A stretch of DNA of 64,000 nt, from assembly GCA_904063045.1 (NCBI GenBank), contig CAJFCJ010000014.1, positions 682,001 through 746,000 on the forward strand, in the 5' to 3' direction. Under the pieces are notes generated by a model. That model worked only from the letters and a program-made list of their open reading frames with translations, was not told the DNA's origin and searched no databases. Made by a program: the position numbers and the translations under genes. The stretch is from Dimorphilus gyrociliatus (Eukaryota; Animalia; Annelida). This document shows positions 5,418-59,612 of the stretch, one piece after another. Within the stretch, counting starts at the first letter, position 1, and every line of letters begins with the position of its first letter.

Positions 5418-6198
5418 CTACTACACAAAATGGCGGTCAATATTAAGGCGATATCCAATCACCGTTCAGTTTACATCGGTCGTTAATCATCATACATGCG
5501 CTAGCGCCATCTGAAGATCAAAATTATAGACATTGAGGTGCTCTTTAGGCCTAAGATTTCCTTTAAACAAAAACCATGAAATTTAATCTTCTTTTCAATA
5601 ATAAAATTTCTGGGAAAGCAGATGTCTTTACGGTCACAGCTGACCAGTTAAGACCTTATTTAAGCAGATTTTAATCAAATCTATACATCAAGCTAACAGC
5701 ACTATCCTGTAATCTGACCCGATACCCGCTTTGCGGTATTGCTGATTCCTACCGAACGATTTATACGCCTAGTGAGGGCATAAAATTATGTTTAAAATTC
5801 CTATGGGGATTGCGTGACAAAATCAATATGCTAAAAATGAAAAAGAATATCAAATAAGATAATTAGAATGAAAAAGGAGCAAGAAATCCTAGCAAATATT
5901 AATAATACAAAAGGATCTCTTTTTCCTTCTTATTCCCTATTCCGTAACTGTTTGTATAAACCATATATATGCTAAATTGTTTTTATGCTTCTTAATACAT
6001 TATTTTTTATTGAAAACATTTGGCAATATTGAAAACCTCTGTTGTTCATTTAAGCCTATAGTATGTTCTTTTCTATTTTTGTTTTTGGTCAAGTCGAAAG
6101 ATGGCGCTTTTTTATATTTATAGAATATTTAAATTTAAGTGAACTTTTAAAATTTCAAAATATATCTGTAAAACACTTTCAAAAATAAAAACAAAAAC

Positions 6199-6585
6199 AT
6201 GGTTAGAGGAGACACTATCCAGAAGCTGCATAGCTTTTCTCATAGTAGTTCTACCTCTAAACTCAATAAAAATGGTGAAAGATTAAACATTGATAGGAAT
6301 TTACTATCAAGTTCTAGCGATGCTGATAAACTGCAAAAAATCTGGAAACTAGGACAAAAGAGTCCGATACCTCTACAGTACAAAGCCACTTGGACAAGTG
6401 AATCTGATTTAACTTCACCTTTTAATGAAAGATACCCTAGAAGGTGCTCTTCAACTGATTCATCACTCCTTTATTCGCCTAATCCCAGCGAATCGGATAG
6501 CAACTCTATAGACACATTTTTTGTTCAGAGTACGACAATGCTTGAAACTATAGAAGAAGAAGGAGAGGATAAATCACATTTTTAG
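6199..6585 (+). CDS. Uncharacterised 128-aa Ser-rich single-exon protein
   Basis: Good start context (aaaaacATGg), 128 open codons in very AT-rich DNA, protein-like low-complexity composition (RRCSSTDS, LETIEEE). No family recognised. Confidence 0.55.
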   Translation: MVRGDTIQKLHSFSHSSSTSKLNKNGERLNIDRNLLSSSSDADKLQKIWKLGQKSPIPLQYKATWTSESDLTSPFNERYPRRCSSTDSSLLYSPNPSESDSNSIDTFFVQSTTMLETIEEEGEDKSHF

Positions 6586-6763
6586 ATTAAGGATGGTCAG
6601 TCTAACGAGTATTCTTGAGTTTCTTCGTATATAAATTTATTTAAAATCAGTTTATCTATTAATTATCATTAATTTTCCATACACTAAAAGCATAAAGCAA
6701 AGCTTATAAAATCTGTAGTTAATATTAAATATTTGAAAAAGGAAATATTCCATGCAGTTGCTC

Positions 6764-7234
6764 TCATACAGTTCCTACTTTTTGCTTAAATTTTTCAACT
6801 TCCCGTAGAACAACTTCTTCTACTTGTTTTTTATTGGCTTTTGGATTTTCTTGTATGAACTTAGCAATTTCCAAATAGCATTCCGTCTGTAAATTGATAA
6901 TATATTAACGAACAGTTGAATTAGAAACAGAATATGTAATTTCGCATACTCTATAGGTTTCGATCGTGTCTTGCTTCGAAATTCTTTTGTAAACTTCATA
7001 ACCTATTCTTGCTTTAGTTGTTATTTCAGCTAGCCATTTTCCATCGTCTCCTTTTTGCATCCACATAAGAGTACCTATCTGAATGACGCATACATTCCCA
7101 TTTATAAATTCTTGTATATTTTCTTTAAATTCGAATAATTTGAACGTTTAAACCATGGATCTTACCTGCTGTAGAAGATCTGGCGTTGATATGCGCCATT
7201 CATCAGAGTTAAATAAGGAGCTGGCAATGGACAT
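6764..7234 (-). CDS. Uncharacterised 106-aa helical protein, three exons, absent from the ORF track
   Basis: Exons 7234-7166, 7078-6950, 6886-6764, all phase 0, donors GTAAGA/GTATGC and CAG acceptors: MSIASSLFNSDEWRISTPDLLQQ|IGTLMWMQKGDDGKWLAEITTKARIGYEVYKRISKQDTIETYR|TECYLEIAKFIQENPKANKKQVEEVVLREVEKFKQKVGTV*. Confidence 0.8.
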
Positions 7235-7945
7235 TACTATATTATTATTATTATTGTTTAGATGTTACCAAATCTCAGTCAAATATAATACCAAAACAAA
7301 TTACGGTGTCCACAAGATAAAGCTAGTGTTGCCACCTTGCGCCCGGTAACGGAATTAATCACATTGCTAGGGTATATAATTAATTGTTTATTTAAGTCAC
7401 CTTTTGTTATATAAACAAAAGTTATATGAGGTTTTGCGATACAGACCTGTTGCTATATCGTTTTTCAATATTTATAACAGCTTCCGGGTGTGTCTTGTAG
7501 AATATATTATGCAAACTAAAACTATTAAGAGGTCTGCTTTTAGGGTCGAGAACTCTATTTATTCATAAATCTTATGGAAATAAGATAAGGATTTTGTGTT
7601 GGATTAGATAGGGGAAAGTGCGATTATTCTGTATTGTTATTTTTAATTTGTATTTGAATTATGAAAAATTCTCAAACAACAGGAACACGAATTACACAAC
7701 AGTAGCTTACTTATAAAAAGTGGCATAAATAAAAGATCTTGTTCTATTTGTTTAAGATCTTTTTTCGGTAGTAGAATGATTCTACCAACAATATAACGAT
7801 TATAAGAAAGAACATAAAAAGGAATATTAAAATTCATTTCCATTTGAGTAGAAAGAAAATAATAGTTCATGTTTTTCCTTGAGCTCTGTTAACATTTGCG
7901 TACATCTCACTAAGAAGATCGGTTAAACAAAAAAAGTTTTGGTTT

Positions 7946-9420
7946 TTAGTTTTCTGGCAATAGTTCAGAATCAAAAGTATCAGACCGGCTTAAATAGTCT
8001 GAGGAAGACGAGTCTTCATTTAACCTCGCTGATTCAGGCATCGATTTAGACGTTCTCATTTGATTGCATTCTCTCGTATTCTTCTCGAAATAACTCATAT
8101 ACTTGGCCGGTAAGCGTCTGGCTGTTGGCGGTTTGGGTCGTCTGGGCTGTGTTGATTAGTTGTTATTCAGATAAATAGATGTGGGATAGGGAAAATAAAA
8201 TTAAAATTACCGCTTTTAAAAGTGTATGCTGTTGAAGTACTGAGAGCTCCTCTTCGTCAACGCTATGCACGCCCTCATCCTCCTCTGACTCATTTTTCAT
8301 CTTTTCGTACAACTCCCTCTGAAATCAGCCCTAGATTAGTCTGATTTAGATTGTTTGTCGAGCGAATAGACTTTGCCAAAATTGCACTTAATCATTTTCA
8401 TAAAGGCAGTTAACCGTAAATTTTTGCGTAGGAGCTAGTGGATACAATATAACGTTTCTAATATTCCTCGCAGTACATACCTTCTTGTCTGCAGGTTGAA
8501 TTAGGTCGGATGTCTTAAGTAGCACCACTTGTTTTTCGTTACTGTAGAATATTTAAAAATCGATTAACCAATAGTATAATATTTTGAATTGATTTAGGAG
8601 GAATAAGTCGCTTGTCTTAATGACTCATGGCTGGTGCAAAAATAAGTATCTGAATTATTTCACGCTTATAAATATAACCTAAAATGTTAACTATGCTGCA
8701 TATGCCTTAAATAATCAATAAATATCAAACCTTAAACTTTAACATAGGGATTAATACATAAATAATATGTATAGTGTAAGTACATATGTACGTTCTGCAT
8801 ATATTGTATATTGAGTCAATAAAGAATGCTTATATATCATAGATATTTATATAAATATAAAATATACTTTATGTTTTTGTATCTTAGCGAAATGATATAG
8901 CTTATACATATTTTTCTATTTTTATACAAAAGTAAGCCTACGGCTAAGTTTTACATAAAACTTTGGCATTATCAGCCTGTTTTCACAATGACGACCTTAG
9001 CCTGATTGTATAAACTTACGCCAGAGGAAATGAATTATCAGTTCTTTTTAAGTGTTCGTTATCCGTTAGTTCATTCCCAATTTTTTGCCTGGGTCCTCTT
9101 CTATTCAACTTCCAACAGATGCATGCTATTATTATAGAAATAAGGACAATCATTCCTCCCAACGATGCACCAATAATGAAACCGAAAGATGAAATAAAAT
9201 CAGGATAGTTTTGCGTTAGCACTTCGTAATCAGTTGAAGGCGAGGTAGAAGAAATCATTGTCAATGTGTCTCCTTTAGTCGGAGTCGATGCTGTTGAGTA
9301 ATTTGCTTCCGGTGAGGTTGTTGAATTCTGAGTAGAATTCGACGTTGCGTTCGATTCAACGTCTAAAAAACTGAGGAATATGACTGTTAAACTGATTAGC
9401 GTCCGATAAGGCGATGGCAT
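7946..9420 (-). CDS. Type I single-pass membrane protein with short Ser/Thr-rich glycosylated ectodomain, ~256 aa
   Basis: Exons 9420-9020, 8541-8481, 8318-8211, 8146-7946 join in frame (phases 2,0,0). Signal-like N-terminus, sequons NAT/NST/NST/NYS, TM FGFIIGASLGGMIVLISIIIACICW followed by KLNRR, long cytoplasmic tail. Confidence 0.8.
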
Positions 9421-10984: not shown

Positions 10985-13900
10985 TTAATATATTCTTCTG
11001 CTGTATCTATATTTGCTGGACATTTGCCTGTAAATCATTTTAAAGTTCCTTTGATGTTCTTCTTCTAAATGCTCACCATTGCTTTCCAACTCGTCTTCAT
11101 CTTGATCTGATGCATTATCGACAATAGCATGACTTTCATTATTTGCTCTATAACAATCGGCGTAAACTTTTATAGCTTTTTTATATATTTTCTTGGCAGC
11201 CTTTCCATTTCCCCTCAGTTTTGTCATGGATAGAAGCTGTAGAAAAGTACCCCATCTGTGTTTTATCATACCGCATAGTTGTAGGATGAGAACCAAGGCG
11301 AAAAAGAGCATAAATGCTAAGCCGGCTGGTTGAAATTTATATCCTCCCCAAAGTGTGGGTCTAAGACTAGTATCAGCTTGAAGCATATAATTAAATAGGA
11401 CCCATAAGCCATTTGCCAACCACATACCGAATCCAACTTGGTTCCTTAAATCTAATAGTTCACTACGTACCCTCTCCGATTCTTCTTTAGTGGGATTCAA
11501 CGGCTTTAGATATTTTTCTATTAACTTGGTCCAAAAGATTTCCTCTTCTGTGTTCAACAGTTCCTTTTCGTTTTTACGTACATTGATCCATTTATTTTTC
11601 AAATGACCTGCAACTGGTGTTGCAGTATCATTTTTCTGATTATTCTTACTTGTATCTATATTCGTTTGGTCTTCTTCAACCGCTTCACCAGCTTTAACTA
11701 CTTCAGCTGCTTCACCTTCCTCTGCTTCTAATTTTTCTCGGGAATTCACCAGTCTTGGTAAGTCAGTTAACAAAGATTTCATGTCAGCATGTATGGAACT
11801 TAAAATGCCGATCATTTTACTTTGATTTTCGGCAGTTTTCGAGGTAAATAGTTGATTTATGATATCTTTAATATCATTTAGAACTGATACTCTTGAAAAT
11901 ATGCCAAAGAACTTTTTCTTCGATTGAGTCTTTACATCTTCTGTCCCTGTTTTCACCTCTGGTGTTTTGCTTTCTCTAGTTCCCCAGCTAGTCACATGTA
12001 GATTGCACATGGAGTATATAACGAGTATCAAATATCCAGAGGGTATGGTGAGGAAATATAAGATACCATGCGCTAAACAGTAAACCTCTTGAGGATGAAC
12101 AATGCCAGCAAAGATAAAAGCTACCGCAAACGCAACTATAAAAACTAATGAGGGGTTGATTTCTGACAATCTAGTTGCTGATTGTATAATTGAGACCAGA
12201 ACAATAAGCATAATACTTGTATAGAGAGTAGATAAAAGTCCTCCGATAAGAATTTGTGTGTCGTTCTTACACTTGAAACATACAGCAATATAGAATACTG
12301 CAGGGCCCAAAGCTACTCCATAGCATACCCAAAGGTCCCATTTCGGAAATACGGTCGTAAAAGCTGCTGCAATACTTAATAATATTGTCGAGGGTCCTAA
12401 TATAGTCGATATCATTAAAAAGAACTGGTATAATATGTAGAATGGGCTAATGTTTTGATTATTCGCCCTTACACTTTGAGAATCGGATAAAAGATCAAAA
12501 ATATTAGCCAATGTTGAAGGCATCCAGCGTCTTCTCTGGAGAAAGAATTCCTTGAAACTTTCGGGACAGAAAGTTAATGCATCAGAGGCAGCTGTGTAAT
12601 CTACTCGGAATCCTGCTTGAATAAGCAATGTACAGAGCCATCTATCTTCTCCTTGATCCCACTGAATGTGATGTACTGGTTCTTCGGCTACGGATGCGTA
12701 CTTTCTAAGCACATTGTTAGATAGCAGACTTGATCCTCTAAATAAAGAGAAACAGCCAGGAGAACAAAGAACACTACCTAGAACATGCTCTGTTGACTTT
12801 TGAAACCAATGACCAATAGCATACTCGAATATTTGATACCAGGTCATCGGACCACTTCCAATGGGATGTATACGCCCACAGGCTGCACCAGTTTTTTCAT
12901 TCTTCGTCATTCTATTTACCAGTAATGTAACGGCTTCGGGTTTAAAGTCTACATCTCCGTCTAAAGCCAATATAAAAGTTTGTTCTGCTTCATCTTTTTG
13001 TTCCGCAGTCATTTCACTTGGCAATCTCATATCTCTCCAATTCTGTCTTCCTTTGGACTCTTCATAATCATTTTCCACTCTAGCCGTATCTTCGTCATTT
13101 TTTAATCCACAGATTTTGAAACATAGTAGATAATACATATACATAACTTGCGACCAACGTTTCTTTCGCCTTATTTTATCTCTATCCTTTAAGTGGACAT
13201 AAATCATTGTTTTTCCAATAAGTTTATAAACCAATCGACCTCCGTAAGGTGTTTCAATTCTTTTGGGAGGTTCTAAAGGAACACTCGTCTCACAAACAGA
13301 ATTTTGGGCTTCCTTCATAACATCCATAAGTCTTACCACGTGTTCATTGAAGTCAATTTTTCCATCATCTGTCTTTTTCATGGCATCGTCGAATAATATG
13401 TGAGCTAAATAATGATTAAAATATTAGAAATGATAGAATCTTACTTAAAGCATGTTCTACTGACTTTCAAATTCATAGAAACTACTTTTTGGGTTTGCTT
13501 CCTCTTCTGAAGAAGTTTTCTTAGGCTTAGAAGTCCCTTGTTGATTTTGCCTTCTCTTCTTACATGCTTCCTCTCTTTTTATACTGAGATACTTGTCCAT
13601 CCTAAACACAGATTTCATTATTTGCATCATTTCATTCCTATTTTCGTGCCACATAGTTGCACAAGCATACACTTTTTTCACCCGCTGTCCTGGCTGCTGA
13701 GCTTGTTCTTCATTGAGTTGTGGAAGCTCATCTGTAGCACTCAAAAATCTTCGTCTTTTATTCTGATCTATTCCAGCAAAATGTTCTTCTTCTTCTGCTG
13801 TTGGATTTTTTTCTTTTTCGTTTGCGTTCTTTTTAAGTTTATCTAATTTATGATGATCTTCTCTTCTCTTGTTAAGTATTAGGTTAGAGTTGATTGTAAT

Positions 13901-16900
13901 CATATTGTAGAGCGGCAGAGCAAATATATCTTCCCTTTTCGCTAGAGGTGCCGTGTTTTTATGCCAAATGTGACGTCCAATCCATAATGTTGATATCCAT
14001 GCCACCAAAATGAATATGATAACAAGAGCAGTCTGCAAGCCTGTCATGTCGAAGTTTGTAAGTTTGATTTCGAATGAACCGCTTGATATAGCAGGAATGT
14101 ATCCATTGGTTTGCAGAATTACAAATACAACGAGTAACGGAGTAGCTATAGTTACAGGTACCGAATAAGAGACGTATTGCATTTTCGTCTTAATGGCCAA
14201 AGATCCTGTATAATAAGCTAGAGCTGCTCCAATACCCATTGATATTGCAGGTGTCCAAAATATTTCAACGTACGTCTTCGTATCAGCGAAAGGATGGAAG
14301 CTGAAGGATTTTACAATGCCAGGTCCCGTAAATTCAAACAAGATCCCAAAAGAAATCACAAAAGTAATGTGGCAAAGACATAACACCATATTGGAGATAT
14401 TTCTTTTAATTATAAGAGCACCACGTAGAGGGTCAAAAAAATCTACAAAGTTCTCCCATATTTTAAAAGAACAAAATAGTAGTGACACCAAAGGCATCCA
14501 TATATTAGCTAGATTGTCTGCATCCACAGCGAAATCTAATTGTAGACCAATAGATATCAATGGAAAAATAGTGCATAGTAATTGTCCCATAAATGCCAAT
14601 ATGTCAAAAGCCTTATAAATTTTAACACGTAAATTAACTCTGTTATTATCACCATCATTATGTAATTGAGGCGATTGAGAGTTTTTGCTGCATTTCAGAA
14701 TCGGTAAAATTTTTAGAAAGGATGGAAAAAGTGAAACCGAATATAAAAGTCCTATACCAGATAAACTGCTAAAGATTGGTAGTATCCTAGTTGCTAACAG
14801 AACTTGACCAACAGCATCCAACAGTTCCAAACAGACAAGGAAAAGTAAAACTTTAATTTTCGGTCTGCTCTTATCTCCAAAAAGAAAAAATGCGAAGCTT
14901 ATTAAGCCAGAAAAAAATGGAGGAATGCATAAGAATAATAGCAGCTGAGACCAAGTTCTTTCGTATTCAATTTTAGCTTCGTCAGAGGCAATAGAGTCAT
15001 TTATGAGTTTTAAGTTTTTATTCAAATTGGAAGTCATCCATAGTAATCCCAGACTGCTCCAGATAATTCCACCTAATGTACAAATAAATAAAAGAACATA
15101 CATAACTACTTTGAGTCCTTTTAGCGCAATATTAAAGTTTTCACTAGCTGAGGTTCGTTCAGACTGTATTATGTCCGCTTTGTCCCATGGGCTATATAAA
15201 TAGATACAAAAGTTATAATGTATATACTATATAATGTAACATACAGTTTTTCATTCTTCGCTTCACATTCATCTTTTGACGTATTTGCTAACGTTGGCTC
15301 AGCTATATTATTCAATTTATCCAGCATTGATTCAGTTTCTTCATCTATTCTATCTCTGTTGTCAATGTTTCTCGCGTTTCTTGCTCTCTTAGTTCTCCTC
15401 CTAAAAGATGAACGCTTCTTTGCAACTATTAGTCTGTTTAAAAATAAATGGTAATGTGATCGTTAAATCGGAAGATACGAAGCAAAAAAGAGATCATACC
15501 TTGTCTGTTCAGTCGTTTTACGATTAGTTAATCTTCTGGATATCAAGTGCGTAGTTCTACTCGATGGCCCATTTCTCCTTTCATAGCTGTGCAAAAGGGT
15601 CTCCAAAATTGTATATGCAGAAGTTTGCAAATAAACTCTCTTCCTTCCTAACCAGTAGTCGTTTTTATCTAATTCTCCTCTTTGCTCTAAGTAGCTCATA
15701 CAATCTTTTGTGAAAGCTTTTTCATCTTTTCCAGAATTCTCAAAATTTTCAGCTAACTCTTCTTCCATGTGATGATACCTTTTGCTAAAGTTAATAAAGC
15801 TAAAGCTAATAGGACATATCTGTTGATACAATTTATCAATATCCCTTATTAAACTATCTTTCAATTGACGATCTACTACTCCTTCATCATACATCTCTGA
15901 TTCGCCTGTATCATTTGTTTTTATACATTTGACAAAGTATGGATTTGAAATTTTTAACAGTTTCATTATTTCTGCTATTGAATTACTGAATTGATTGCCA
16001 ATAGTTAGATTGTTATCATTATCATTCTCGCTTGAGTATTTCAGTATGCTTTTTCCCATTGGTGCCAAAGACAATTTACCGGTATTGGAAACTTCCATTT
16101 TCATACTACGTATATTCTCAATTTTGATATTACCAGTATCTTCAATAGGAACTGTAAAAATATCTTGTATAAAGGGATTATTAGATTCTTCGAATATTCC
16201 CTTTATCGTCCTACATTTGTAATCAACGTTTTTGAGGAGGTATCCTTCCGCATCGTAAAGTACCTCTCCAAAATGATGTAAGATTGTAAATGACGTTTTA
16301 ACTGGCCTTTTAACTGTAAAATAATTTTGACGGGGAAAAGCACTAGCTTTCGAGATCATTTGACGAATAAGATCATAATCATCTTTCAATCCTTGATCAT
16401 GGTTATTCACTATAAGCCAAAACATTTGCAGCAAATGTAAAGCTTTCAGTTTGCCATCGACAATTCTTTCACTTGGATTATATATCTCTCTGTCTTCTTC
16501 ATATTGACGTTTCTTATCTTCTATAAGGCTTTCAGTATAGAACGAATGAAGTTCTTCGTTCAGAGAATTACATATCAATTGTTCAAATCCATTTTTTTCT
16601 CCTTTTCCATCTCTGCTAGGTAAATTGAATAGTGAAATCATATTTGGACGAGTTTCCGTCAATTTCCCAGAAATCTTTTCTATTAAGTCTTCTTCCATTG
16701 CCATAACTGAATTTACCCTATTAACTATCCAATCAAATAGACTGCAATATATTGTTTTGGCTAAGGAGTCTCTGCTATATTCGGCCATTTCTAATGTATT
16801 TTTGAAAAATAGAGATGGATTATGGAGAGAAATATCAGCCAAGAGAACTTTGCGAAGCATTGCTATTGAAATTCCTAAAAGATTGGCCGCATTCCTAAAG

Positions 16901-18265
16901 TATTTATTATTGCAAACCGTTAAATCGCTGCTACCATTTTTGTTTTTCATTTCAAATTTAATATTTGTCAGATTTAATACGGCGGAGATCATCGCAAAGA
17001 TTGTTCCCTTATCCTGAAAGAATATAAAAAAAAGTACAGTAGAGCAATGCAGTATTATTTAATATGGATTAAAAGAGACAAGATATCTTTACATCATCGT
17101 CCAAATTCAGGATTTTCATTGTTTCTATTAAATGGTTAAATTTGCCTTTAAGAAATTTCTCCTCCTCTGTGCTTAACGTTTGAGGCTGATCTTCAAAATT
17201 TTGAAGAATCCTTTAGAAATGGAATAATTAGAAAAAAAGGGGGGATTAGAAAGCTGTAATACTTATTGTTGCAATTGATAAAGACATTTTCCTCACCTAT
17301 AGTTTTTAATTTCTTCTAAGTGAAAATTTTCTTTTTCCTCATCACTTAATCCTGCCAGGATCCAATAGAAGATGTGAAAGTTAAAATGACCCTCTTCCCT
17401 CTCGATCAATCGTGACTTTTCAAGAAGGTACACATTCAGAAATGATCCCTTAATTAATCCTTCTCCATCGACGAAAACATTAAACATTTTCGTAAATCTA
17501 GTGGAATTTTTATTCTTAGGTGTCTTAGCAGTACCAAAAACATCAACTAATTCATTAGCTTTTAACATTAATTGCCTTAAATTTCTAGTTTGACGGATGT
17601 TTCTAAAATCCTGCTTAGATGCAATATAGTTTAACTGATTGATTATTTTCTGAAAAATTTCGCCTTTGCCAGAGCCGGATTCCCCAGAAATAACAATTGA
17701 TTGATTCTCTTTGCTCTCCAATAGAGTTTTTAAGGATCTTGCTACAATAAGATTGATATGGTCTGGTTCACGTTCAAAATTGCCGCCAATCAAATAACGA
17801 TCATCATTATTCTAATAGAGGAAACAAGGGATAAATTTATGAAAAAATGTAAATATTTATTATGTCAATCAATTGATTTGGAATAGTTTTACCTCTTTAA
17901 ATTCGATATCAATGAATGGATTCGTAAAAATAAGAAGGTCGTTTAGGCATTCCTGAAAGAACATTTATTATAAAAGGATCTATTTCTTATACAGAGAATT
18001 TTGTTTAGTCCAATTCACTTCCGCAATAAAGTAACGAAGTATTTAAAAAGTGAAAATAAGAAAGGAAGAGTAGAGGATAAAGAAGAAAGGAAAAGAAGAA
18101 GAAAAAGAAGAAAGGAATAGGTATTAAAAAATATTAATTATACATAGATACATAGTCATATTATAAATAATACTATTATAAGCTTACATAATAATTGCCA
18201 TCTTGAAAATTTTGAGCCAGCCTATTGTTAATATCCCTTTCTTCGTATCCCAAACTTTGCGACAT
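10985..18265 (-). CDS. Chitin synthase with N-terminal myosin motor domain
   Basis: Exons 18265-18188, 17952-17893, 17811-17297, ~17210-17091, ~17013-15500, 15433-15245, 15191-13465, 13404-10985. Myosin: LLIFTNPF, QSIVISGESGSGK, YLLEKSR, FHIFYWILAGL, LAKTIYCSLFDWIVNRVN, FTILHHFGEVLYDAEGYLLKN, PYFVKCIKTN. GT2 synthase: ACATMWHE, HILFDDA, LALDGDVDF, CSPGCFSLFR, DQGEDRWLCTLL, QRRRW, SWGTRE. Confidence 0.96.
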
Positions 18266-51506: not shown

Positions 51507-52926
51507 GTACTGTAGAGATAAAATTCCAAGCTATTAATTACAATTTACACAGTAAACCATTAATAAACTTGCAATGCATTATATTTTATTTAGATGGGTC
51601 GGAGCCTGGTGGATTGGTTTTATCATTGCAGGAATAATATGCATAATCATTTCCTTGCCAATAATTTGTTTCCCAAAAGTCCTTCCTGGTAAATTAATAA
51701 TTTTATTGAATTAGTAAGATTTCTAATATATATTTACATATATATGTATATACTTTTTAAAATTAGGAGCGGTAAAAATTCAACAAAAGAGATTAGATGA
51801 AACAACTGCAGGAGCTAAGTGTTCAGTTGTTGTTTGTTCGTCGGATTCAACAAGAGATTTTTTAAAAAATGTTCCAAAATTAATAAAGGATTTATTATGT
51901 AATGGACCATTCGTTTTGCTATGCCTTGCTGGAGCTGCAGATGGTTTCGTTCTTAGTGGTTGCGGAGCATTCCTACCAAAGTTTATGGAAAACCAATTTG
52001 CTCTTACGGCAAGTTGGTCTGCAATGTTGGCGGGATTCATTTTTGTTCCTTGTGGAGGAGGAGGAACTTTTACAGGTGGTTTCATCGTCAGATTTTTTGA
52101 GTTGAAATGTAAATCTATCTTGAAAATATGCCTAATCTTCTCCGGGTTAGCAACATTAACTTATTTTGGAATATTGGTTGATTGCGACCAAGAACATGTT
52201 GCTGGTATCAATTATCCATATGCTAATCACACGTCCATGAAACAGCTAACAGTCGATTGCAACCGCAATTGTTTCTGTTCTGACAGTCATTTAGATATGG
52301 TTTGCGACCCACTAGAACAACTAAACTTTGTCTCCCCTTGTTACGCTGGTTGTTCTAAGGTCAAGGACGAGAACACTTGGATAAATTGCTCATGTGTACC
52401 ATCTGGTGCAGTGAAGAAAGGAAGATGCCAAAATACTTGCTATTTCCTTAAAATTTTCCTACCAATTATAGCGTGCCTACTCTTTCTTACTTTTATAACA
52501 TCGATACCAGCCTTATCGGGGACTCTGAGATGCGTTGTAGAAGAAACAAAAAGTTTTGCTTTGGGCATTCAATGGATGATAGTTCGTTGTCTCGGTACAA
52601 TACCAGCACCAATAATTCTTGGTAACGTTTTTGATTCGAAATGTCAATACTGGAAAAAGGATTGCGGACTTAAGAAAAATTGCTTTATCTATCAAAATTG
52701 GGGCATGGCTCGAGATTTGACTATTATTACCCTCTCGACAAAATTTCTAACAACATTGTTCTTTTTTGGAGCTTTCTTGCTCTATCGTACTGACCAGAGC
52801 AAAAGGGGAATAGATGATCCGCCCAGCGTCAACGATGAGGATAAAAGCGATAGTGTTATGCGAAGGATTACTCCAGTGGAATCACTAGACGAATCTAAAC
52901 CCATGCTTAGAGAAACCGCCTTGTAA
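50485..52926 (+). CDS. Organic anion transporting polypeptide, SLCO4A1/4C1-like
   Basis: Exons 50485-51470, 51594-51688, 51767-52926. LQGFIVNG, SLEVRFGL, HKPRWLGLGVLIMG, FTLGVTYLDEN, GPAIGYLLGG, R|WVGAWWIGF, FLPKFMENQF, FVSPCYAGC, LGIQWMIVRCLGTIPAPIILG. Confidence 0.95.
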
Positions 52927-53079
52927 TATGAATAACATTCTTTTCTTTTTTTTACAGTAGCATTTTGTTCTTAACATTAAGTTCTAATCAGTTCACTTGA
53001 AAAAAGTTATATATGGAATTTTTTTTAGATTTATATTTAAAGAAATATTTTTATTTTATACACATTTAAAAAAATTACT

Positions 53080-53280
53080 TTAAAGCCTATATGAATCGTT
53101 CGGAGGTGCTGATCTAGAATTTTCCAATTTCTTTACTTTTTCACTTATCATGTCTCGGGCTTCTTCTGATTTGGGTGTTCTAAATGGTAGGGTTGATAGG
53201 AACACTGCTGAAAATATAGTTAGTAAACTAACGACTTTATTTTGCCCAGCCCATAGGGAAACAGTTCGAAATATTTGCAT
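53080..53280 (-). CDS. 66-aa single-TM microprotein resembling MKKS upstream ORF2 (uMKKS2)
   Basis: MQIFRTVSLWAGQNKVVSLLTIFSAVFLSTLPFRTPKSEEARDMISEKVKKLENSRSAPPNDSYRL*. The pattern W-x3-N-x8-F-x2-V-x-L-x-T is shared with human uMKKS2 as I recall it. AATAAA at 53055-53050 follows the stop. Confidence 0.6.
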   Translation of the reverse strand: MQIFRTVSLWAGQNKVVSLLTIFSAVFLSTLPFRTPKSEEARDMISEKVKKLENSRSAPPNDSYRL

Positions 53281-53295
53281 GACTTGAATGTTCTT

Positions 53296-53472
53296 TTATT
53301 CTTTATCAGCTTTTGGAGGGTCAATCAAAACTCCGGCTAATTTTATATGTTTCCTTTCGTGTTCTGGTACAAAGTCGTCGTTAAACTGAAGACGATACCA
53401 AACGTAATGAATAATGCCAATTGATGGAATAGTAGCAAGTAAAACTTGGTATTTTCTTAAAAAATTCAACAT
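53296..53472 (-). CDS. 58-aa single-TM microprotein resembling MKKS upstream ORF1 (uMKKS1); below the ORF-track cutoff
   Basis: MLNFLRKYQVLLATIPSIGIIHYVWYRLQFNDDFVPEHERKHIKLAGVLIDPPKADKE*. 12 of 27 ungapped positions are identical to the recalled human uMKKS1 segment NLWRDYKVLVVMVPLVGLIHLGWYRIK. Confidence 0.75.
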   Translation of the reverse strand: MLNFLRKYQVLLATIPSIGIIHYVWYRLQFNDDFVPEHERKHIKLAGVLIDPPKADKE

Positions 53473-54281
53473 TTGCCTAAAGCTACCATGAAGTTGATGT
53501 CAAGGTTATAGCCTGGTTCCGAACCCCGTACTTGAGCGTGGAACATCGTTCCGTCTTCAAAGGTGAATTACATAAAAGACATTCCTCTTTTCTCAAAGGT
53601 TTAATCCGTACTAATGATGTGATATTTAATTAATTATCCGAGAGAGTGCATATACTCGTATTGCACTTACAGCAGGTTCAAAAAGAAATTAACAGTAGAT
53701 CTTGTTTGTTCTGTTGATTTGTAGAAATTTAAACTTTAATCCACATTTATTGAATGTAAATGTTGCACAAAATGAGTCAAATTCGTTAAAACTCCTTAAA
53801 AAAGTATGATATTCTGTCAGTAAAAGCTTTTTGAAGTTGAAAATTCCAGCAGGATTTGCAGAATATTTTTGTATACAGAAAAATTATTTCCAGAGTAAAT
53901 AAAAAGTATATACATATATCTATATTGACCTTTGTTTGTCCAATATACAGTCATCCATTTAGTCAAAGAAATCTGACGATGGAAAGAAACAATGTATATT
54001 CTTAAAGTTTAGCTACCAATTGCACTTAGACACATCAAAAAGGATAAAGCATCTGAAGATATGAAAGAGAAAAGATGCAAAAGGAAAAAGTATCCTTTTC
54101 AATTATATTTTTATGAAAACGAAACGTAAAGGACTTGAAGAAATCTTGTAAGTGTTTCGTTAATGCTAAAAGCTACAACATAAATTATCAATAAATAAAC
54201 TAGCTTTGTATTTTATAGAACTATTTTAATAATTTTGCAGTTGATCTAATGCTGTAGTTTAATTGCAATAATTTGGAAGTT

Positions 54282-56925
54282 TCACGAAACAGGAAGAACT
54301 GTATTACTGCGATTACTTTTTATTTGAGATGAGAATTTTTTTCTCGAAATATCGCTTCTTTCATCCTCAGTTGGGAAAGGAGCTGTAACAGGTGGAAGTA
54401 CATCGGATATTGTATTCTGTCTGTTTTTCAACTTTTGCACTCGATCTCTCGCTTCACCTAGACGGCTGTTGGCCTCTTGTAGCATTTTGGCATCGATATT
54501 AGCCCTGGAAAGTGCTCGGTCATTCTGTAATAATAATTGCCTGTGTTCCAAGTATCTTTGTACAATGGCAGCCTGCTCAGCAGTCTGCTGCCTGTATGCT
54601 GATACCATTTCAGATTTGCTGTGAAGTTGATCTTCCTTAACAGTTGAGCGATCATGCTTCATTAAAGCGTTTGACACAGATGTATTCTGGACGGCAAAAT
54701 CACTCACAAACGTCCTTTCTCGCTGTCTAAATCTAGAGATTGCAGTTGACTTAGAACGATGGGCTGTTGCACGCATTAAGGCAGTTCTATGAAGTTCCTG
54801 CCTCTTTTGCAATGATTCTTGTAGGCTTTTTAGCTCTCTCTCACGCCATATAAGGGCATTCGTCCTTTTTTGCTCTTGAGCTGCCTTTACCCTTCGTCTA
54901 GCAGCTTCCCTCTCTTCTTTCATACTCATAACGACCTCAAGTTGATGAGCTAGCTTCTCGGCTTTCTGTCGATCGGAATAGGCCGTGTGAACGGCTCTAA
55001 GGCAAGAAAAACTTGAATCTTCAAACAGCTTCTTTACCATTTGAGAACTCTCCCCACTTTTCTGCTTTTTCTTGGAAACAGGTTTAATAAATAACTTCTT
55101 ATCTATAGCCTCATGAGCTTCACTCATGCCGTGGCGAACGTCTAAACCCGCATTTCTTTTATCAATCAATAATTGGGCTGTTGGGTTAAGTTTATTTCTG
55201 ACAGGTTTAAAACCCCTTAATCGAAAATTGGTGTTCTCCGGGGCATCGTCCTCGTCTTCGGCTTCCGGTGAATTTGGCGGGTTGACAACCGGACCAAAGA
55301 AGTGCCTAACACTGGGCCTTTGAACTCTTTTCTTCTCCTCAGCAGTGGGTGGAGGAGGTTTCACGGAACGTTTTGACCTTCCCCTGGAAGGTAATTTAAC
55401 GGTTGTCTCTTCTCCCAAATATGCATCTACTTCGTCATTTTTCTTGGAGAATTTTAACAATAGACCACCATCTTCCAATTGAGATTTTGATACGCATATA
55501 CCCTTGAAAGCTATGGAACTCTTGACCGATACAGCACTACCGACAGATCTATTTCGAGACTCTGCCCGATCTGTAACGATCGAATTGGCAGAGCGTAAAC
55601 GCTTTCCAGATTGCTGGCGAGATGTTTCAACAGTACCAGATCCTGGCCGTCTATTTGCTAAATACATATCATAATCCATTCTTGTAGTGTCCATCTGAGA
55701 TCCCATTACTTTTACATTTTTAAATAACCTACAACAAATGTAGATATCAGAATATGATACATAAATACACAGAGTATAGCTTAGAGTACATAGTTTGACA
55801 TAACAAACCTGTTAGGTTTCATATGCAGGTGCTTTCTCGTCAAGTACCCTCTAAAAATTCGTTGCAAGAGAAGGACTGGTGAATAGTGAGCCAAGCACTT
55901 ATTAGTTTTATTAATAATCTCACAAAATATCTTCATTTCATCTTCATAGCTGGCGTTCTATCAGAATAATATATCATAAATAAAATTACGCAGTATATAT
56001 ACATTTATTACAAATATTTGGATCATTTACCTGACTTGCATTCTCATATAGATTTATCCTAAAGTTATTAGAAAACATGGCGAATCGACCACCGAATTTG
56101 GCATCTTCTATAATTTCTTCGTCGCTAATTACGTGATGATCTAGCGCTTTCAAAGACCATAAACTATTTACAACATGATGTCGATAATTACGTTTTAAAC
56201 TCAATGGAGTATCATAGAGTGTTAGGATAGTAATAGAATCCAGAGCCCCCAATGATTTTATATGTTCTATCGAGCCTATCGGATTGTCGTGCAGATGTAA
56301 TATTCTTAGATCTGTGAAATTTTCCCAGAAATGAAATCCAGGAATATTTTTAATCTAATTAAGCAAAAACAACTGTAATTCAATATTATTCTAACAGCGT
56401 TTTGAATGATATACTTACTAAATTAGAGCTAACGTCTAATTTAATTAATTTTGTACAACTTTGTAAGCCTTTTATATCCTCAATGTAGTTATTTGCCAAA
56501 GAACATATACGTAAATTAGTAAGTATACCTAAATCTCCTACACCTCTTAACCTAACACCAATCAACTTTACCAAACGAATGTTTGATAATTCATTATTTC
56601 TCTTCTGTCTAAATATTTCAAATCTTTTCCATGGTTGCTTTTCAAGAACTTCTTTATCAACTGGTTCAAACTGTTCTTCTTCTGGGAAGAATTGAGATGA
56701 TATAAATTCTTTTGCTGGAATAAGAAAGTATCCATTCGCTTCGGCCTCTCTGATTATTTCTTCCTATGATTTTAGTTTCAAAATGTTTGTTATTGCGAAA
56801 TAATTCATTTAATTTTACTTTTGAACCTGTCTAAATTCATCTGCAGTTTTAACTGGAGCCAAATGTTCCTCTTTTGCAAATTGCTGTTGCCCTCGAACCC
56901 TTTGCCAGCTGGGTATGCTTACCAT
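54282..56925 (-). CDS. LRRIQ3: Leucine-rich repeat and IQ domain-containing protein 3
   Basis: Exons 56925-56827, 56763-56419, 56354-56031, 55957-55809, 55728-54282. LQSCTKLIKLD, LRILHLHDN, PLSLKRNYRHHVVNSLWSLKALDHHVISDEEII, IQ motif LQRIFRGYLTRK, long coiled-coil C-terminus. Confidence 0.9.
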
Positions 56926-57016: not shown

Positions 57017-57503
57017 CATGAGCGATACTTAAATACGTACTATTTTGTATACTATATTTTGCCGGGTGTTCACAGGAAAAACTGGTTACTTCTCTTTGAA
57101 ATTAATTTCAATCTTTTGCTACTAACCCCATTGTACGATCGACAAATTTTTATGGTTTATTGTGTGGTATATTTTCACAGACAATTACAAAAAAACAGAT
57201 TGATATAGTATTGCGCTAACTCTGATGATATATAAAAAAATGTCTTTTTGAACGATATTACCAACATTTCAAGTAATTTCTATTTTCTTAAAGCTTCAAA
57301 AAAACTCAATGCGAATAGTTAAAGTGACAACTTAGAATCCTAATTAAAATTCATCTCCTTGAATTCGAAATTTGTTTATTTTTGGTTTTCATCTTTCCTA
57401 ATCAAAGTGATCAACCGATTTAAAACGTTGAGATAACGTTTTCCGGCCCACCATCTCCAAGGATAGTTTGAATTTTTGAAAGGGATCAAGAAGATTGCTG
57501 ATA

Positions 57504-59612
57504 ATGTCAGCTAAATTTTGGAAACCTGGAACAGAAAAACCAGGAGCCCACCTTAACGATGAAAGAAAAGGGGATAGCGAATTTCGTTTTGTATCATATA
57601 ATAAACATAGACATTTATCAATACAACAACAGCGTCAACATTTGCCAATATTTAAAAGAAGAAATGAAATATTATATATGATAGACAGATATAAAGTGGT
57701 TGTAATTGTCGGCGAAACTGGAAGCGGAAAATCAACCCAAATACCACAATACTTATTGGAAGCTGGATGGGCTGCTGATTCAAAGAGTATCCTTGTAACT
57801 CAACCACGTCGGGTAGCAGCAGTTTCCCTCGCTTCCAGAGTTGCAGACGAAAGAGGAACGATACTTGGCCAAGAAATTGGATATATTATACGGTTTGAAG
57901 ATTGCTCCGATGACAGAACAAAAGTTAAATTTATGACGGACGGCATGCTAATCAGAACTTTAATGAGAGATCCACTGTTAGAAGGATATTCAGTTATTGT
58001 TATGGATGAAGCTCATGAACGTTCTGTCCAAACGGATTTGGCATTAGGCCTCTTGAAGAAAATTATAGCTAAACGTCCTGATTTGAAGGTTATTATATCC
58101 TCTGCAACTCTGGATGCGGAAGCTATGAAAAATTTCTATAACACAAACTTAACGGACGATGATAGACTAGATACAGCTGCAATCTTGACAGTTGAAGGAC
58201 GAATGTGGCCGGTTGATATCTTTTTCTCAACTAATCCAGTTCCAGATTACCTTGAGGCAACCGTTCAAACTGTATGCAAAATTCATGTTGGACAACCAGA
58301 TGGCGATATTTTAGTATTTTTAACCGGAATGGAGGAAGTTCAACACGTTGTAAGAGAATTAATCGAAAAAGCGCGGGCTATGTTAAAGAAAAGCGATATC
58401 AAACTGAAGATGAAAATAGTACCATTATACGCAGGTTTACCAGGGGCTGATCAGTTCAAAGTATTTGAGAGGACGCCCAAAGGTATGAGAAAAGTTGTTA
58501 TCGCAACAAATATTGCAGAAACCAGCGTTACCATAGACAGAATATGTTATATTATAGACTGTGGCTTTGTTAAACTAAGAGCATATAGTTGTAGAACGGA
58601 TGCATTAGTAGTTATACCAATTTCTCAGGCATCAGCAAAACAAAGATGCGGTAGAGCTGGGCGTGTTAGATCCGGATGTGCTTACAGATTATATACTCAG
58701 GACTCTTACGAGGAGATGAATGAAAACAATGTGCCTGAAATTCAGCGCTGTAGTTTACCATCAGTCATTCTACAACTGAAAGCCTTGGGTGTGTCAAATA
58801 TCGTAAGATTTCCCTTGGTATCACCCCCTCCGGCCCAAAATCTATTAACTGGTGCAGAATTATTGTACGCATTGGGTGCTATTGACAAGTCCTGTCAATT
58901 AACCGAATTAGGAATGAAAATGGCCGAATTACCTGTACCACCTATGTTTTCAGCTATGCTATTAAAAGCTCCAGAGTTTAATTGTAGTCAAGAAATTTTA
59001 ACTATCGTTGCCATGGCTCAAGTAAGAAATGTCTTCGTCGTACCACCAAAACAGAAGAGAGAGGCAGAGAAGCATAGGAGAGTTTTTGCAGTTGCTGAGG
59101 GTGACCTTATATCTCTTTTGAATGTGTATAGGTCGTTTTGCGAGAATGAGCAATCGTCTAGTTGGTGTCAAAAAAATTGGCTTCATTATAAGTGCTTGAA
59201 AAGAGCAATTGAAATACGTGATCAGTTGGAAAGGTGCTTGAAAAAGCTTAAAATTAATACTCGATCCTCAACAGATGACGTTGAAGCAGTTACGAGATGT
59301 CTCGTAACCGGTTTATTTTCTAATGCTGCAAAACTTTATCCAACAGGCGAATATAGAACAATAAGAGACAATGAAGTTTTGCATATACATCCAACATCTA
59401 TCATTTATCCTGTGCGACCTCCACCGGCCTATGTAATTTTCGGAGAATTGATTATGACATCTCAAAATTATATGAGAGACGTAACGGCTATTGAAGGAAA
59501 ATGGTTACACGAATTGGCCGAACATTATTATGATTTTGGCACTGAAAGAGAATTATCAATTAAAAGAAATAGACTGGACGAGGAAAGTTTGACGGATGTA
59601 TTACAGTTCTGA
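57504..59612 (+). CDS. DHX35: DEAH-box RNA helicase 35, intronless CDS
   Basis: Signature N-terminus KFWKPGTE...SIQQQRQHLPIF, GETGSGKSTQ, TQPRRVAA, DEAHER, SAT, ATNIAETSVT, QRCGRAGRV. Confidence 0.95.
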   Translation: MSAKFWKPGTEKPGAHLNDERKGDSEFRFVSYNKHRHLSIQQQRQHLPIFKRRNEILYMIDRYKVVVIVGETGSGKSTQIPQYLLEAGWAADSKSILVTQPRRVAAVSLASRVADERGTILGQEIGYIIRFEDCSDDRTKVKFMTDGMLIRTLMRDPLLEGYSVIVMDEAHERSVQTDLALGLLKKIIAKRPDLKVIISSATLDAEAMKNFYNTNLTDDDRLDTAAILTVEGRMWPVDIFFSTNPVPDYLEATVQTVCKIHVGQPDGDILVFLTGMEEVQHVVRELIEKARAMLKKSDIKLKMKIVPLYAGLPGADQFKVFERTPKGMRKVVIATNIAETSVTIDRICYIIDCGFVKLRAYSCRTDALVVIPISQASAKQRCGRAGRVRSGCAYRLYTQDSYEEMNENNVPEIQRCSLPSVILQLKALGVSNIVRFPLVSPPPAQNLLTGAELLYALGAIDKSCQLTELGMKMAELPVPPMFSAMLLKAPEFNCSQEILTIVAMAQVRNVFVVPPKQKREAEKHRRVFAVAEGDLISLLNVYRSFCENEQSSSWCQKNWLHYKCLKRAIEIRDQLERCLKKLKINTRSSTDDVEAVTRCLVTGLFSNAAKLYPTGEYRTIRDNEVLHIHPTSIIYPVRPPPAYVIFGELIMTSQNYMRDVTAIEGKWLHELAEHYYDFGTERELSIKRNRLDEESLTDVLQF

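Follow-up and report, generated by a model that had tools for sequence, protein, structure and literature searches.

A pair of short open reading frames (ORFs) in the annelid Dimorphilus gyrociliatus is probably a free-standing two-cistron gene for two membrane microproteins, descended from the leader of an MKKS-type (BBS-class) chaperonin mRNA. The pair lies on the minus strand of a 64,000-nucleotide (nt) stretch of genomic DNA (GenBank assembly GCA_904063045.1, contig CAJFCJ010000014.1, positions 682,001 to 746,000 of the forward strand), referred to below as the window. The first frame, ORF1, encodes 58 amino acids (aa) and resembles uMKKS1, the first of two peptides encoded by upstream ORFs (uORFs) in the human MKKS leader. 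The second, ORF2, encodes 66 aa and resembles the second uORF of a cephalopod chaperonin mRNA.

The literature treats uMKKS1 and uMKKS2 as uORFs of MKKS whose conservation is limited to mammals or vertebrates in the accounts given. Whether the leader ORFs of human MKKS are important for repressing MKKS translation or for the proteins they encode is still under debate. In the literature searched, no description was found of invertebrate homologues, of a stand-alone version or of a J-protein context for either peptide. An earlier interpretation of this DNA from its letters alone (the sequence-only reading) had likewise known of no invertebrate description; finding none is not proof of absence. 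The parts of the pair are as follows.

53296-53472, minus strand: ORF1, 58 aa, ATG at 53472 and stop at 53296; first cistron, predicted uMKKS1-family single-pass membrane microprotein
53080-53280, minus strand: ORF2, 66 aa, ATG at 53280 and stop at 53080; second cistron, predicted single-pass membrane microprotein
53281-53295, minus strand: intercistronic spacer between ORF1 and ORF2, 15 nt
53395-53445, minus strand: hydrophobic helix of ORF1, aa 10-26, preceded by a basic N-flank (hydropathy and AlphaFold)
53368-53409, minus strand: ORF1 family signature H-Y-x-W-Y-x-L-Q-F-N-x-x-F-V, aa 22-35, at the end of the helix and beyond
53182-53235, minus strand: hydrophobic helix of ORF2, aa 16-33 (hydropathy), a block conserved in the ORF2 alignment
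53050-53055, minus strand: AATAAA, candidate poly(A) signal of the pair, 24 nt past the ORF2 stop

Coding status of the pair and the family of ORF1

The sequence-only reading had placed the two ORFs at these coordinates, 15 nt apart on the same strand, and had given each a basic N-terminus and one transmembrane segment. Both descriptions were confirmed. By hydropathy, an N-flank with a net charge of +2 precedes a single hydrophobic segment in each of the two peptides. An AlphaFold model of ORF1, computed from a 26-sequence alignment, consists of one helix at residues 2-28, with block means of the predicted local distance difference test (pLDDT) of 89-97 over residues 1-30. The stretch after the helix is non-helical, and block means fall to 66 and 58 over the last 18 residues.

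Two close relatives of ORF2 were found in public assemblies. In the corresponding contigs (L001-L005) an ORF1 orthologue is followed after 11-12 nt (12 nt in L001/L004, 11 nt in L005) by an ORF2 orthologue and then by the same convergent OATP gene as in the window. Among the three species, the ratio of non-synonymous to synonymous substitution rates (dN/dS, Nei-Gojobori) is 0.09-0.19 for ORF1 (dS 0.57-0.94) and 0.12-0.14 for ORF2 (dS 0.77-1.26). In Fisher tests of synonymous versus non-synonymous changes, the excess of synonymous change was significant for ORF1 (p=2e-5) and for ORF2 (p=2e-9). Given this low dN/dS (0.09-0.19) and the retention of both ORFs, and of their order, in two related species, both are judged to be coding and under strong purifying selection. 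With this selection as a proxy, both are presumably translated.

ORF1 and ORF2 share a reading frame in the window, with TAA and five codons between them (53281-53298). Stop-codon read-through to give an ORF1-ORF2 fusion was considered and rejected, as the frame is shared in the window, L001 and Sepia and is not shared in L005 or L013.

Pfam contains no family for ORF1, ORF2 or any of 26 members of the ORF1 family, and a word-indexed protein search returned nothing for ORF1. An exhaustive phmmer search of 1.8 billion representatives yielded 30 homologues of ORF1 at E<1e-3, most of them 54-93 aa long, with the common motif F-L-R-R-N-x-V-L ... P ... H-Y-G-W-Y-x-L-Q-F-N-x-x-F-V. Two positions, W25 and Q29, never vary in the alignment of 26 members, and H22, Y26, F34 and V35 are conserved in at least 90%. 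The Atlas clusters nearest to ORF1 are an arthropod cluster of 58 aa and two chordate clusters of 63-64 aa, with scores of 0.93-0.94 (0.93 for the chordate clusters) and 206-212 of 256 features shared.

The sequences of human uMKKS1 and uMKKS2 were taken from the supplement of PMC7066179. ORF1 aligned with uMKKS1 in BLASTP at 35 bits with 15/44 identities (E=1e-9, single comparison), which reproduced against the published sequence the motif match given in the sequence-only reading. A profile of 28 ORF1-family members, built without the human protein, scored uMKKS1 at 39.4 bits (E=1.3e-10). The best shuffled control reached 8.3 bits among 6000 plain shuffles and 17.8 bits among 5000 that kept the N-flank, helix and tail blocks. 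Judged by these scores ORF1 is a member of the uMKKS1 (micro-MKKS63) family, and it is probably the orthologue of the human protein. The two share the core N-x2-R-x-Y-x-V-L ... P-x2-G-x-I-H-x2-W-Y-R, whereas the segment L-Q-F-N-x-x-F-V after the helix, kept in the ORF1 family, is largely lost in human. A tree of the short ORF1-family sequences is poorly resolved and does not separate copies linked to a chaperonin from copies linked to a J-protein.

The length of ORF1, the charge of its N-flank and its single hydrophobic helix fit the build of the uMKKS1 family (~55-70 aa, a short basic N-flank and one helix on the N-terminal side). Within the window ORF1 is not the first leader ORF of a BBS-type chaperonin mRNA, a position that its homologues in Sepia, L013/L014 and the P0018 contig do occupy. 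We regard that position as a feature of gene context and not of the protein. Within the family, a location at mitochondrial membranes and an effect on respiration are known for the human protein only (PMC13577902, PMC7066179), which is reported from mitochondrial membrane fractions and from outer-membrane proximity labelling (PMC11837024, PMC13577902). By homology ORF1 would be a signal-anchored mitochondrial membrane protein.

ORF2 and the second leader peptide

Word-indexed searches with ORF2 returned close relatives only, even when the alignment served as query, and no credible neighbour was present in the Atlas. An ORF2 profile was built from the sequences of the window, L001, L005, L008 and L013, leaving out that of Sepia. 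It matched the 50-aa second uORF of the Sepia esculenta chaperonin mRNA at 36 bits (E=6e-11). By this match ORF2 is homologous to the second ORF in the leader of a molluscan (cephalopod) chaperonin mRNA. ORF2 also occupies the slot of uMKKS2, that of a single-pass ORF of 50-66 aa directly after a uMKKS1 homologue, and the same slot is filled in Sepia, L013 and the P0018 contig.

Sequence comparison with human uMKKS2 gave a different result. BLASTP produced no alignment with ORF2 at E<=100, the ORF2 profile scored uMKKS2 at 2.6 bits (rank 78 of 6002, p=0.11 with segment-preserving shuffles), and Smith-Waterman comparisons gave p values from 0.03 to 0.5. Two homologies had been proposed in the sequence-only reading; the profiles bore out the one with uMKKS1 and not the one with uMKKS2, for which the proposed match of 6/21 residues is not above chance. 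As far as the sequences can tell, the link between ORF2 and uMKKS2 is one of position, and their similarity is not significant.

On the ORF1-family profile human uMKKS2 reached 10.4 bits, a higher score than that of any of 6000 plain shuffles (p=0.0012 with block-preserving shuffles). Compared with ORF1 members one by one, it gave z=4-6 for most of them. It is closer to the uMKKS1/ORF1 family, with which it shares G-x-H-L-G-x-Y, than to the lophotrochozoan ORF2 family. Human uMKKS2 may be a diverged tandem copy of uMKKS1. The corresponding origin for ORF2, as a duplicate of ORF1, is not claimed, since hhalign found no relation between the ORF1 and ORF2 families.

These scores raise the alternative that ORF2 and vertebrate uMKKS2 are unrelated, which we consider slightly less likely than not and which is compatible with descent of the annelid pair from a chaperonin leader. 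On this view vertebrate uMKKS2 would have arisen by tandem duplication of uMKKS1, lophotrochozoan ORF2 would be a separate invention or a far older duplicate, and only ORF1 would be common to bilaterians. The contrast between the two profile scores of uMKKS2 and the negative hhalign result both point in this direction. On the other hand, both are single-pass peptides of 50-66 aa, and they share one position, after a uMKKS1 homologue and before a chaperonin ORF. Detectable similarity is quickly lost in short transmembrane peptides, and the ORF2 profile is based on only six sequences.

Gene context and probable origin of the free-standing pair

A 58-aa homologue of ORF1 (P0023) was found on 24 contigs of 2-5 kb from several RNA-seq runs. 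Six of these contigs were fetched, and three came from runs listed in Sepia esculenta transcriptome papers (SRR23936182, SRR25097173 and SRR31864756). The 3-kb Sepia contig L016 contains an ORF1-like frame (94-270), the 50-aa single-pass ORF (325-477) and a Cpn60_TCP1 protein of 595 aa (629-2416; Pfam E=6e-46). Across the Sepia contigs the length of this protein is 589-595 aa. Beyond Sepia, an ORF1 homologue is followed by Cpn60_TCP1 at three loci, with a small ORF between them in two. The order in L013/L014 is ORF1 (6001-6246), an ORF2-like frame (6506-6703) and Cpn60_TCP1 (6984-8180). The P0018 contig has the same order of ORF1, small ORF and Cpn60_TCP1, and at the P0015 locus the Cpn60_TCP1 gene lies 2.4 kb downstream of the ORF1 homologue. 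The linkage to a chaperonin that the sequence-only reading had singled out for comparison is seen, in the order ORF1, ORF2, chaperonin, in Sepia, L013/L014 and P0018. In the metagenome contig L008 (171-1471) the ORF1 and ORF2 homologues are ~890 nt apart rather than 11-54 nt, and the 2.4 kb readable downstream contain no chaperonin.

The chaperonin of L013 is very remote from CCT and thermosomes (E ~1e-4), and the PDB gives only distant CCT/thermosome matches. It matches the Sepia chaperonin at E=4.5e-35, and its nearest Atlas cluster is labelled BBS10. We regard the Sepia and L013 proteins as BBS-type chaperonin-like proteins. The length of 589-595 aa and the common leader favour their identity as MKKS.

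No chaperonin-like or J-domain coding sequence was detected on either strand of the window by tblastn (nothing below E ~2), and a six-frame profile search for both gave a best match of 5.5 bits. The sequence-only reading had described a stand-alone pair without MKKS, followed ~25 nt later by AATAAA and then by a convergent SLCO gene that left no room for a main ORF. This description held in each part: AATAAA is found at 53055-53050, 24 nt past the ORF2 stop, the OATP exon ends at 52926, and the pair, next to the OATP gene, is conserved in L001-L005. The surroundings are as follows.

52927-53079, no strand: region between the convergent stop codons, 153 nt, highly conserved across three species
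51916-52926, plus strand: last coding exon of the convergent OATP/SLCO gene (Pfam OATP, E=4.3e-64)
54282-55706, minus strand: single-exon 474-aa low-complexity ORF, upstream of ORF1

We propose that the ancestral mRNA carried uORF1, uORF2 and the chaperonin, as it still does in Sepia and vertebrates. In the Dimorphilus clade the chaperonin ORF would no longer stand behind the leader, having been lost or relocated, and the OATP gene now converges on the locus 153 nt past ORF2. Because strong purifying selection has been kept without a main ORF behind them, ORF1 and ORF2 would have a function as proteins, in addition to any role in holding back translation of a main ORF. Both would be made from one short mRNA, since the spacing is 11-15 nt in three species and one Sepia RNA contig carries both.

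The sequence around the start codons is suggestive of how ORF2 could be reached. The ORF1 AUG, with C at -3 and U at +4, stands in weak surroundings. In all three species there is no AUG in any frame between the two start codons, and a purine is at -3 of the ORF2 AUG. The avoidance of AUG is significant in the window sequence (P=0.007). ORF2 might be translated through leaky scanning, through reinitiation across the 11-15-nt spacer, or both; leaky scanning fits because of the weak ORF1 AUG, the lack of an intervening AUG and the purine at -3 of ORF2. In otherwise diverged sequence 5' of ORF1, the window and L001 have short conserved blocks in common, at 53497-53508 and ~53560-53570 (TAACCTTGACAT, ACCTTTGAAGA), which may serve the pair as promoter or initiator elements.

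At the other end of the pair, the AATAAA at 53055-53050 alone carries little weight because the window, with 33% GC, is rich in this hexamer (237 copies versus 205 expected). It is conserved in two related species (L001, L005) and is a candidate for the signal at which the pair's mRNA would be polyadenylated. Between the convergent stops, the 153 nt are almost invariant, with long invariant runs, in three species that approach saturation at synonymous sites. The 3' ends of the ORF2 unit and of the OATP gene presumably both fall within this region and, given its near-invariance, must overlap or share signals.

It is unlikely that the pair is not an independent gene. Under that alternative, ORF1 and ORF2 would be downstream ORFs in a long 3' untranslated region (UTR) of the 474-aa gene, or would form the 5' exons of a chaperonin gene that has its coding exons outside the window. 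The 474-aa ORF does end 810 nt upstream on the same strand, in an arrangement conserved in L001-L003; a promoter or transcription start is not definable, and poly(A) hexamers are uninformative at this base composition. The stretch from the 474-aa ORF to ORF1, however, contains several ATTAAA/AATAAA signals (54263, 54230 and 53751). The OATP gene converges on the pair directly past ORF2, no chaperonin-like exon occurs in the 53 kb downstream, and dN/dS indicates selection on both peptides whatever the transcript.

ORF1 homologues have a second recurrent context. At four or five independent loci, the leech Helobdella robusta included, they lie immediately upstream of a J-domain protein of ~230-275 aa with a C-terminal transmembrane segment, which may resemble DNAJC4. 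The loci are as follows.

L009, 23-1397: ORF1 homologue and J-protein
L010, 86-1153: ORF1 homologue and J-protein
L011, 56-928: ORF1 homologue and J-protein
L021, 18-1021: ORF1 homologue and J-protein
L012, 5907-7860: ORF1 homologue and J-protein

In L010/L011 the gap between the two frames is 45 nt, and the J-protein matches Pfam DnaJ at E=3.5e-22. L021 was the sole locus from a metagenome scan with a 5-sequence alignment. In the leech Helobdella robusta, gene model T1ESC1 fuses the ORF1 homologue and the J-protein.

This context suggests, tentatively and with a probability well below even, a broader history in which the uMKKS1-family peptide comes from a leader cistron of ancient origin in animals, accompanies chaperone-type genes and has an autonomous function. 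In cephalopods and vertebrates it would stand before a BBS-type chaperonin, and in the leech and at least three other taxa before a membrane-anchored J-protein. Together with its partner peptide it could persist alone after the main ORF is gone, and vertebrate uMKKS2 would be a tandem copy of uMKKS1 and not the counterpart of lophotrochozoan ORF2. If true, the conserved role would be that of an autonomous mitochondrial-membrane peptide, possibly tied to chaperone biology, and cis-repression of MKKS would be secondary.

The direction of change from chaperonin leader to free-standing pair follows from the distribution of the three-ORF order. Because this order is found both in a cephalopod (Sepia) and in human, the linkage of the uORFs to a chaperonin predates the mollusc-vertebrate split. 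The stand-alone pair would be a derived state, an orphaned leader, because one origin followed by loss or relocation is much more parsimonious than independent captures. The sequence-only reading had proposed the reverse, with a stand-alone pair in the bilaterian ancestor and a later, lineage-specific attachment to MKKS. Stand-alone or ORF1-only contexts do occur in the window, L001-L005, L006 and L008, and the position of ORF1 before a J-protein in other taxa implies that the leader is mobile. We nevertheless consider this reverse order improbable. ORF1-like, ORF2-like and Cpn60_TCP1 frames follow one another on Sepia esculenta mRNA contigs as they do in human, and it is far less parsimonious than one loss that genes of one kind should have captured these two peptides, with their order unchanged, independently in molluscs and in vertebrates. 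The antiquity claimed for the pair thus stands for ORF1 as a uMKKS1-family protein and, for ORF2 and uMKKS2, by position and not by sequence; the claim that the position as MKKS uORFs is lineage-specific is not supported, as the arrangement is already present in Sepia.

Several results weigh against descent of a free-standing gene from an MKKS-type leader. The Sepia and L013 chaperonins are not assignable among MKKS/BBS6, BBS10 and BBS12, and the Atlas label for L013 is BBS10. The absence of a chaperonin covers the 64-kb window, within which loss and relocation are not distinguishable. Because the similarity of ORF2 to uMKKS2 is not significant, a two-peptide leader in the bilaterian ancestor is argued from position alone, and because ORF1 homologues also precede a J-protein in other taxa, the ancestral partner of ORF1 is uncertain. 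AUG avoidance is not significant in L001 and L005 (P ~0.35). Transcript evidence at the locus was not obtained from RNA runs that hold 16-20% of sampled words.

Frames left open by chance, or conservation of an RNA or other non-coding element, would suit the lack of a Pfam family and the empty word-based search for ORF1, but this hardly credible account is already refuted by the mostly synonymous substitutions, the 30 ORF1 homologues and the ORF2 profile match to Sepia. The confident AlphaFold helix also speaks against it.

The 474-aa ORF is rich in K, R, E, S and Q, is coiled-coil-like and has no Pfam family; a 470-aa ORF is located at the matching position in L001-L003. A weak tblastn match (E=4.8) raised the possibility that it is a degenerate chaperonin, which was rejected as there was no profile match and no Pfam family. 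Divergent from it is a 705-aa DEAH-box helicase ORF (57495-59612, plus strand; DEAD, Helicase_C, HA2 and OB_NTP_bind) in one uninterrupted frame, a neighbour also present in L001. Farther away, within 10985-16992 on the minus strand, an ORF for a myosin head (15463-16992) is located directly upstream of one for chitin synthase (10985-13381). Fusion of myosin to chitin synthase is typical of lophotrochozoans such as molluscs, and by this gene the animal is an invertebrate, probably akin to the cephalopod within a phylum or superphylum.

Comparison with known systems

The window amounts to a natural experiment on the human debate: in one invertebrate clade the main ORF appears to be detached, and both leader peptides are strongly selected. 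This speaks for a role of the peptides as proteins, apart from the control of MKKS. The results extend the uMKKS1 family from mammals or vertebrates to molluscs and annelids, suggest that the three-ORF arrangement is old, and reveal a second recurrent context upstream of a J-protein. They also offer tractable non-vertebrate systems and a conserved motif, H-Y-G-W-Y-x-L-Q-F-N-x-x-F-V, for mutation.

Like the annelid pair, human uMKKS1 (63 aa, Q9HB66, micro-MKKS63) and uMKKS2 (50 aa, V9GZ13) are encoded by two consecutive ORFs in the same order, each with a basic N-flank and one transmembrane helix. The annelid locus differs in having no MKKS main ORF behind the pair, in its 15-nt spacer and in an ORF2 that is not significantly similar to uMKKS2. 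Knockout of micro-MKKS63 in human microglial cells is reported to lower oxidative phosphorylation and respiration (PMC13577902). The same 2026 study describes the 63-aa peptide as the dominant product of the MKKS locus, needed for normal respiration (PMC13577902). The Sepia esculenta chaperonin mRNA (L015-L020) has homologues of ORF1 and ORF2 in the order of the window; unlike the window, its ORF2 is 50 aa long, its spacer is 54 nt and a Cpn60_TCP1 frame of 589-595 aa follows.

The MIEF1 uORF and the SLC35A4 uORF are likewise conserved leader ORFs, and their peptides have mitochondrial roles of their own that do not depend on the main ORF (PMC7530721, PMC11837024). They have no sequence relationship to ORF1 or ORF2. 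We know of no microprotein of the MIEF1/SLC35A4 uORF type that occurs as an orphaned stand-alone gene. Insect polycistronic small-ORF genes (tarsal-less/pri, sarcolamban) are short mRNAs with several small ORFs and no long main ORF. They contain repeats of one peptide, whereas the two peptides of the window differ from each other and would be derived from a leader.

A further parallel is found in human. As Akimoto et al. (2013) are summarised in PMC11837024, alternative polyadenylation within the 5' UTR of human MKKS yields mRNAs that carry the uORFs only, and three such isoforms are noted in PMC13577902. Like these mRNAs, the annelid locus, which is known from DNA alone, would encode the leader peptides only and has a candidate poly(A) signal just after them. 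In human this is a choice of isoform at a locus that retains MKKS, whereas in the window it is fixed in the genome. The annelid locus would be the genomic equivalent of the short uORF-only MKKS mRNAs.

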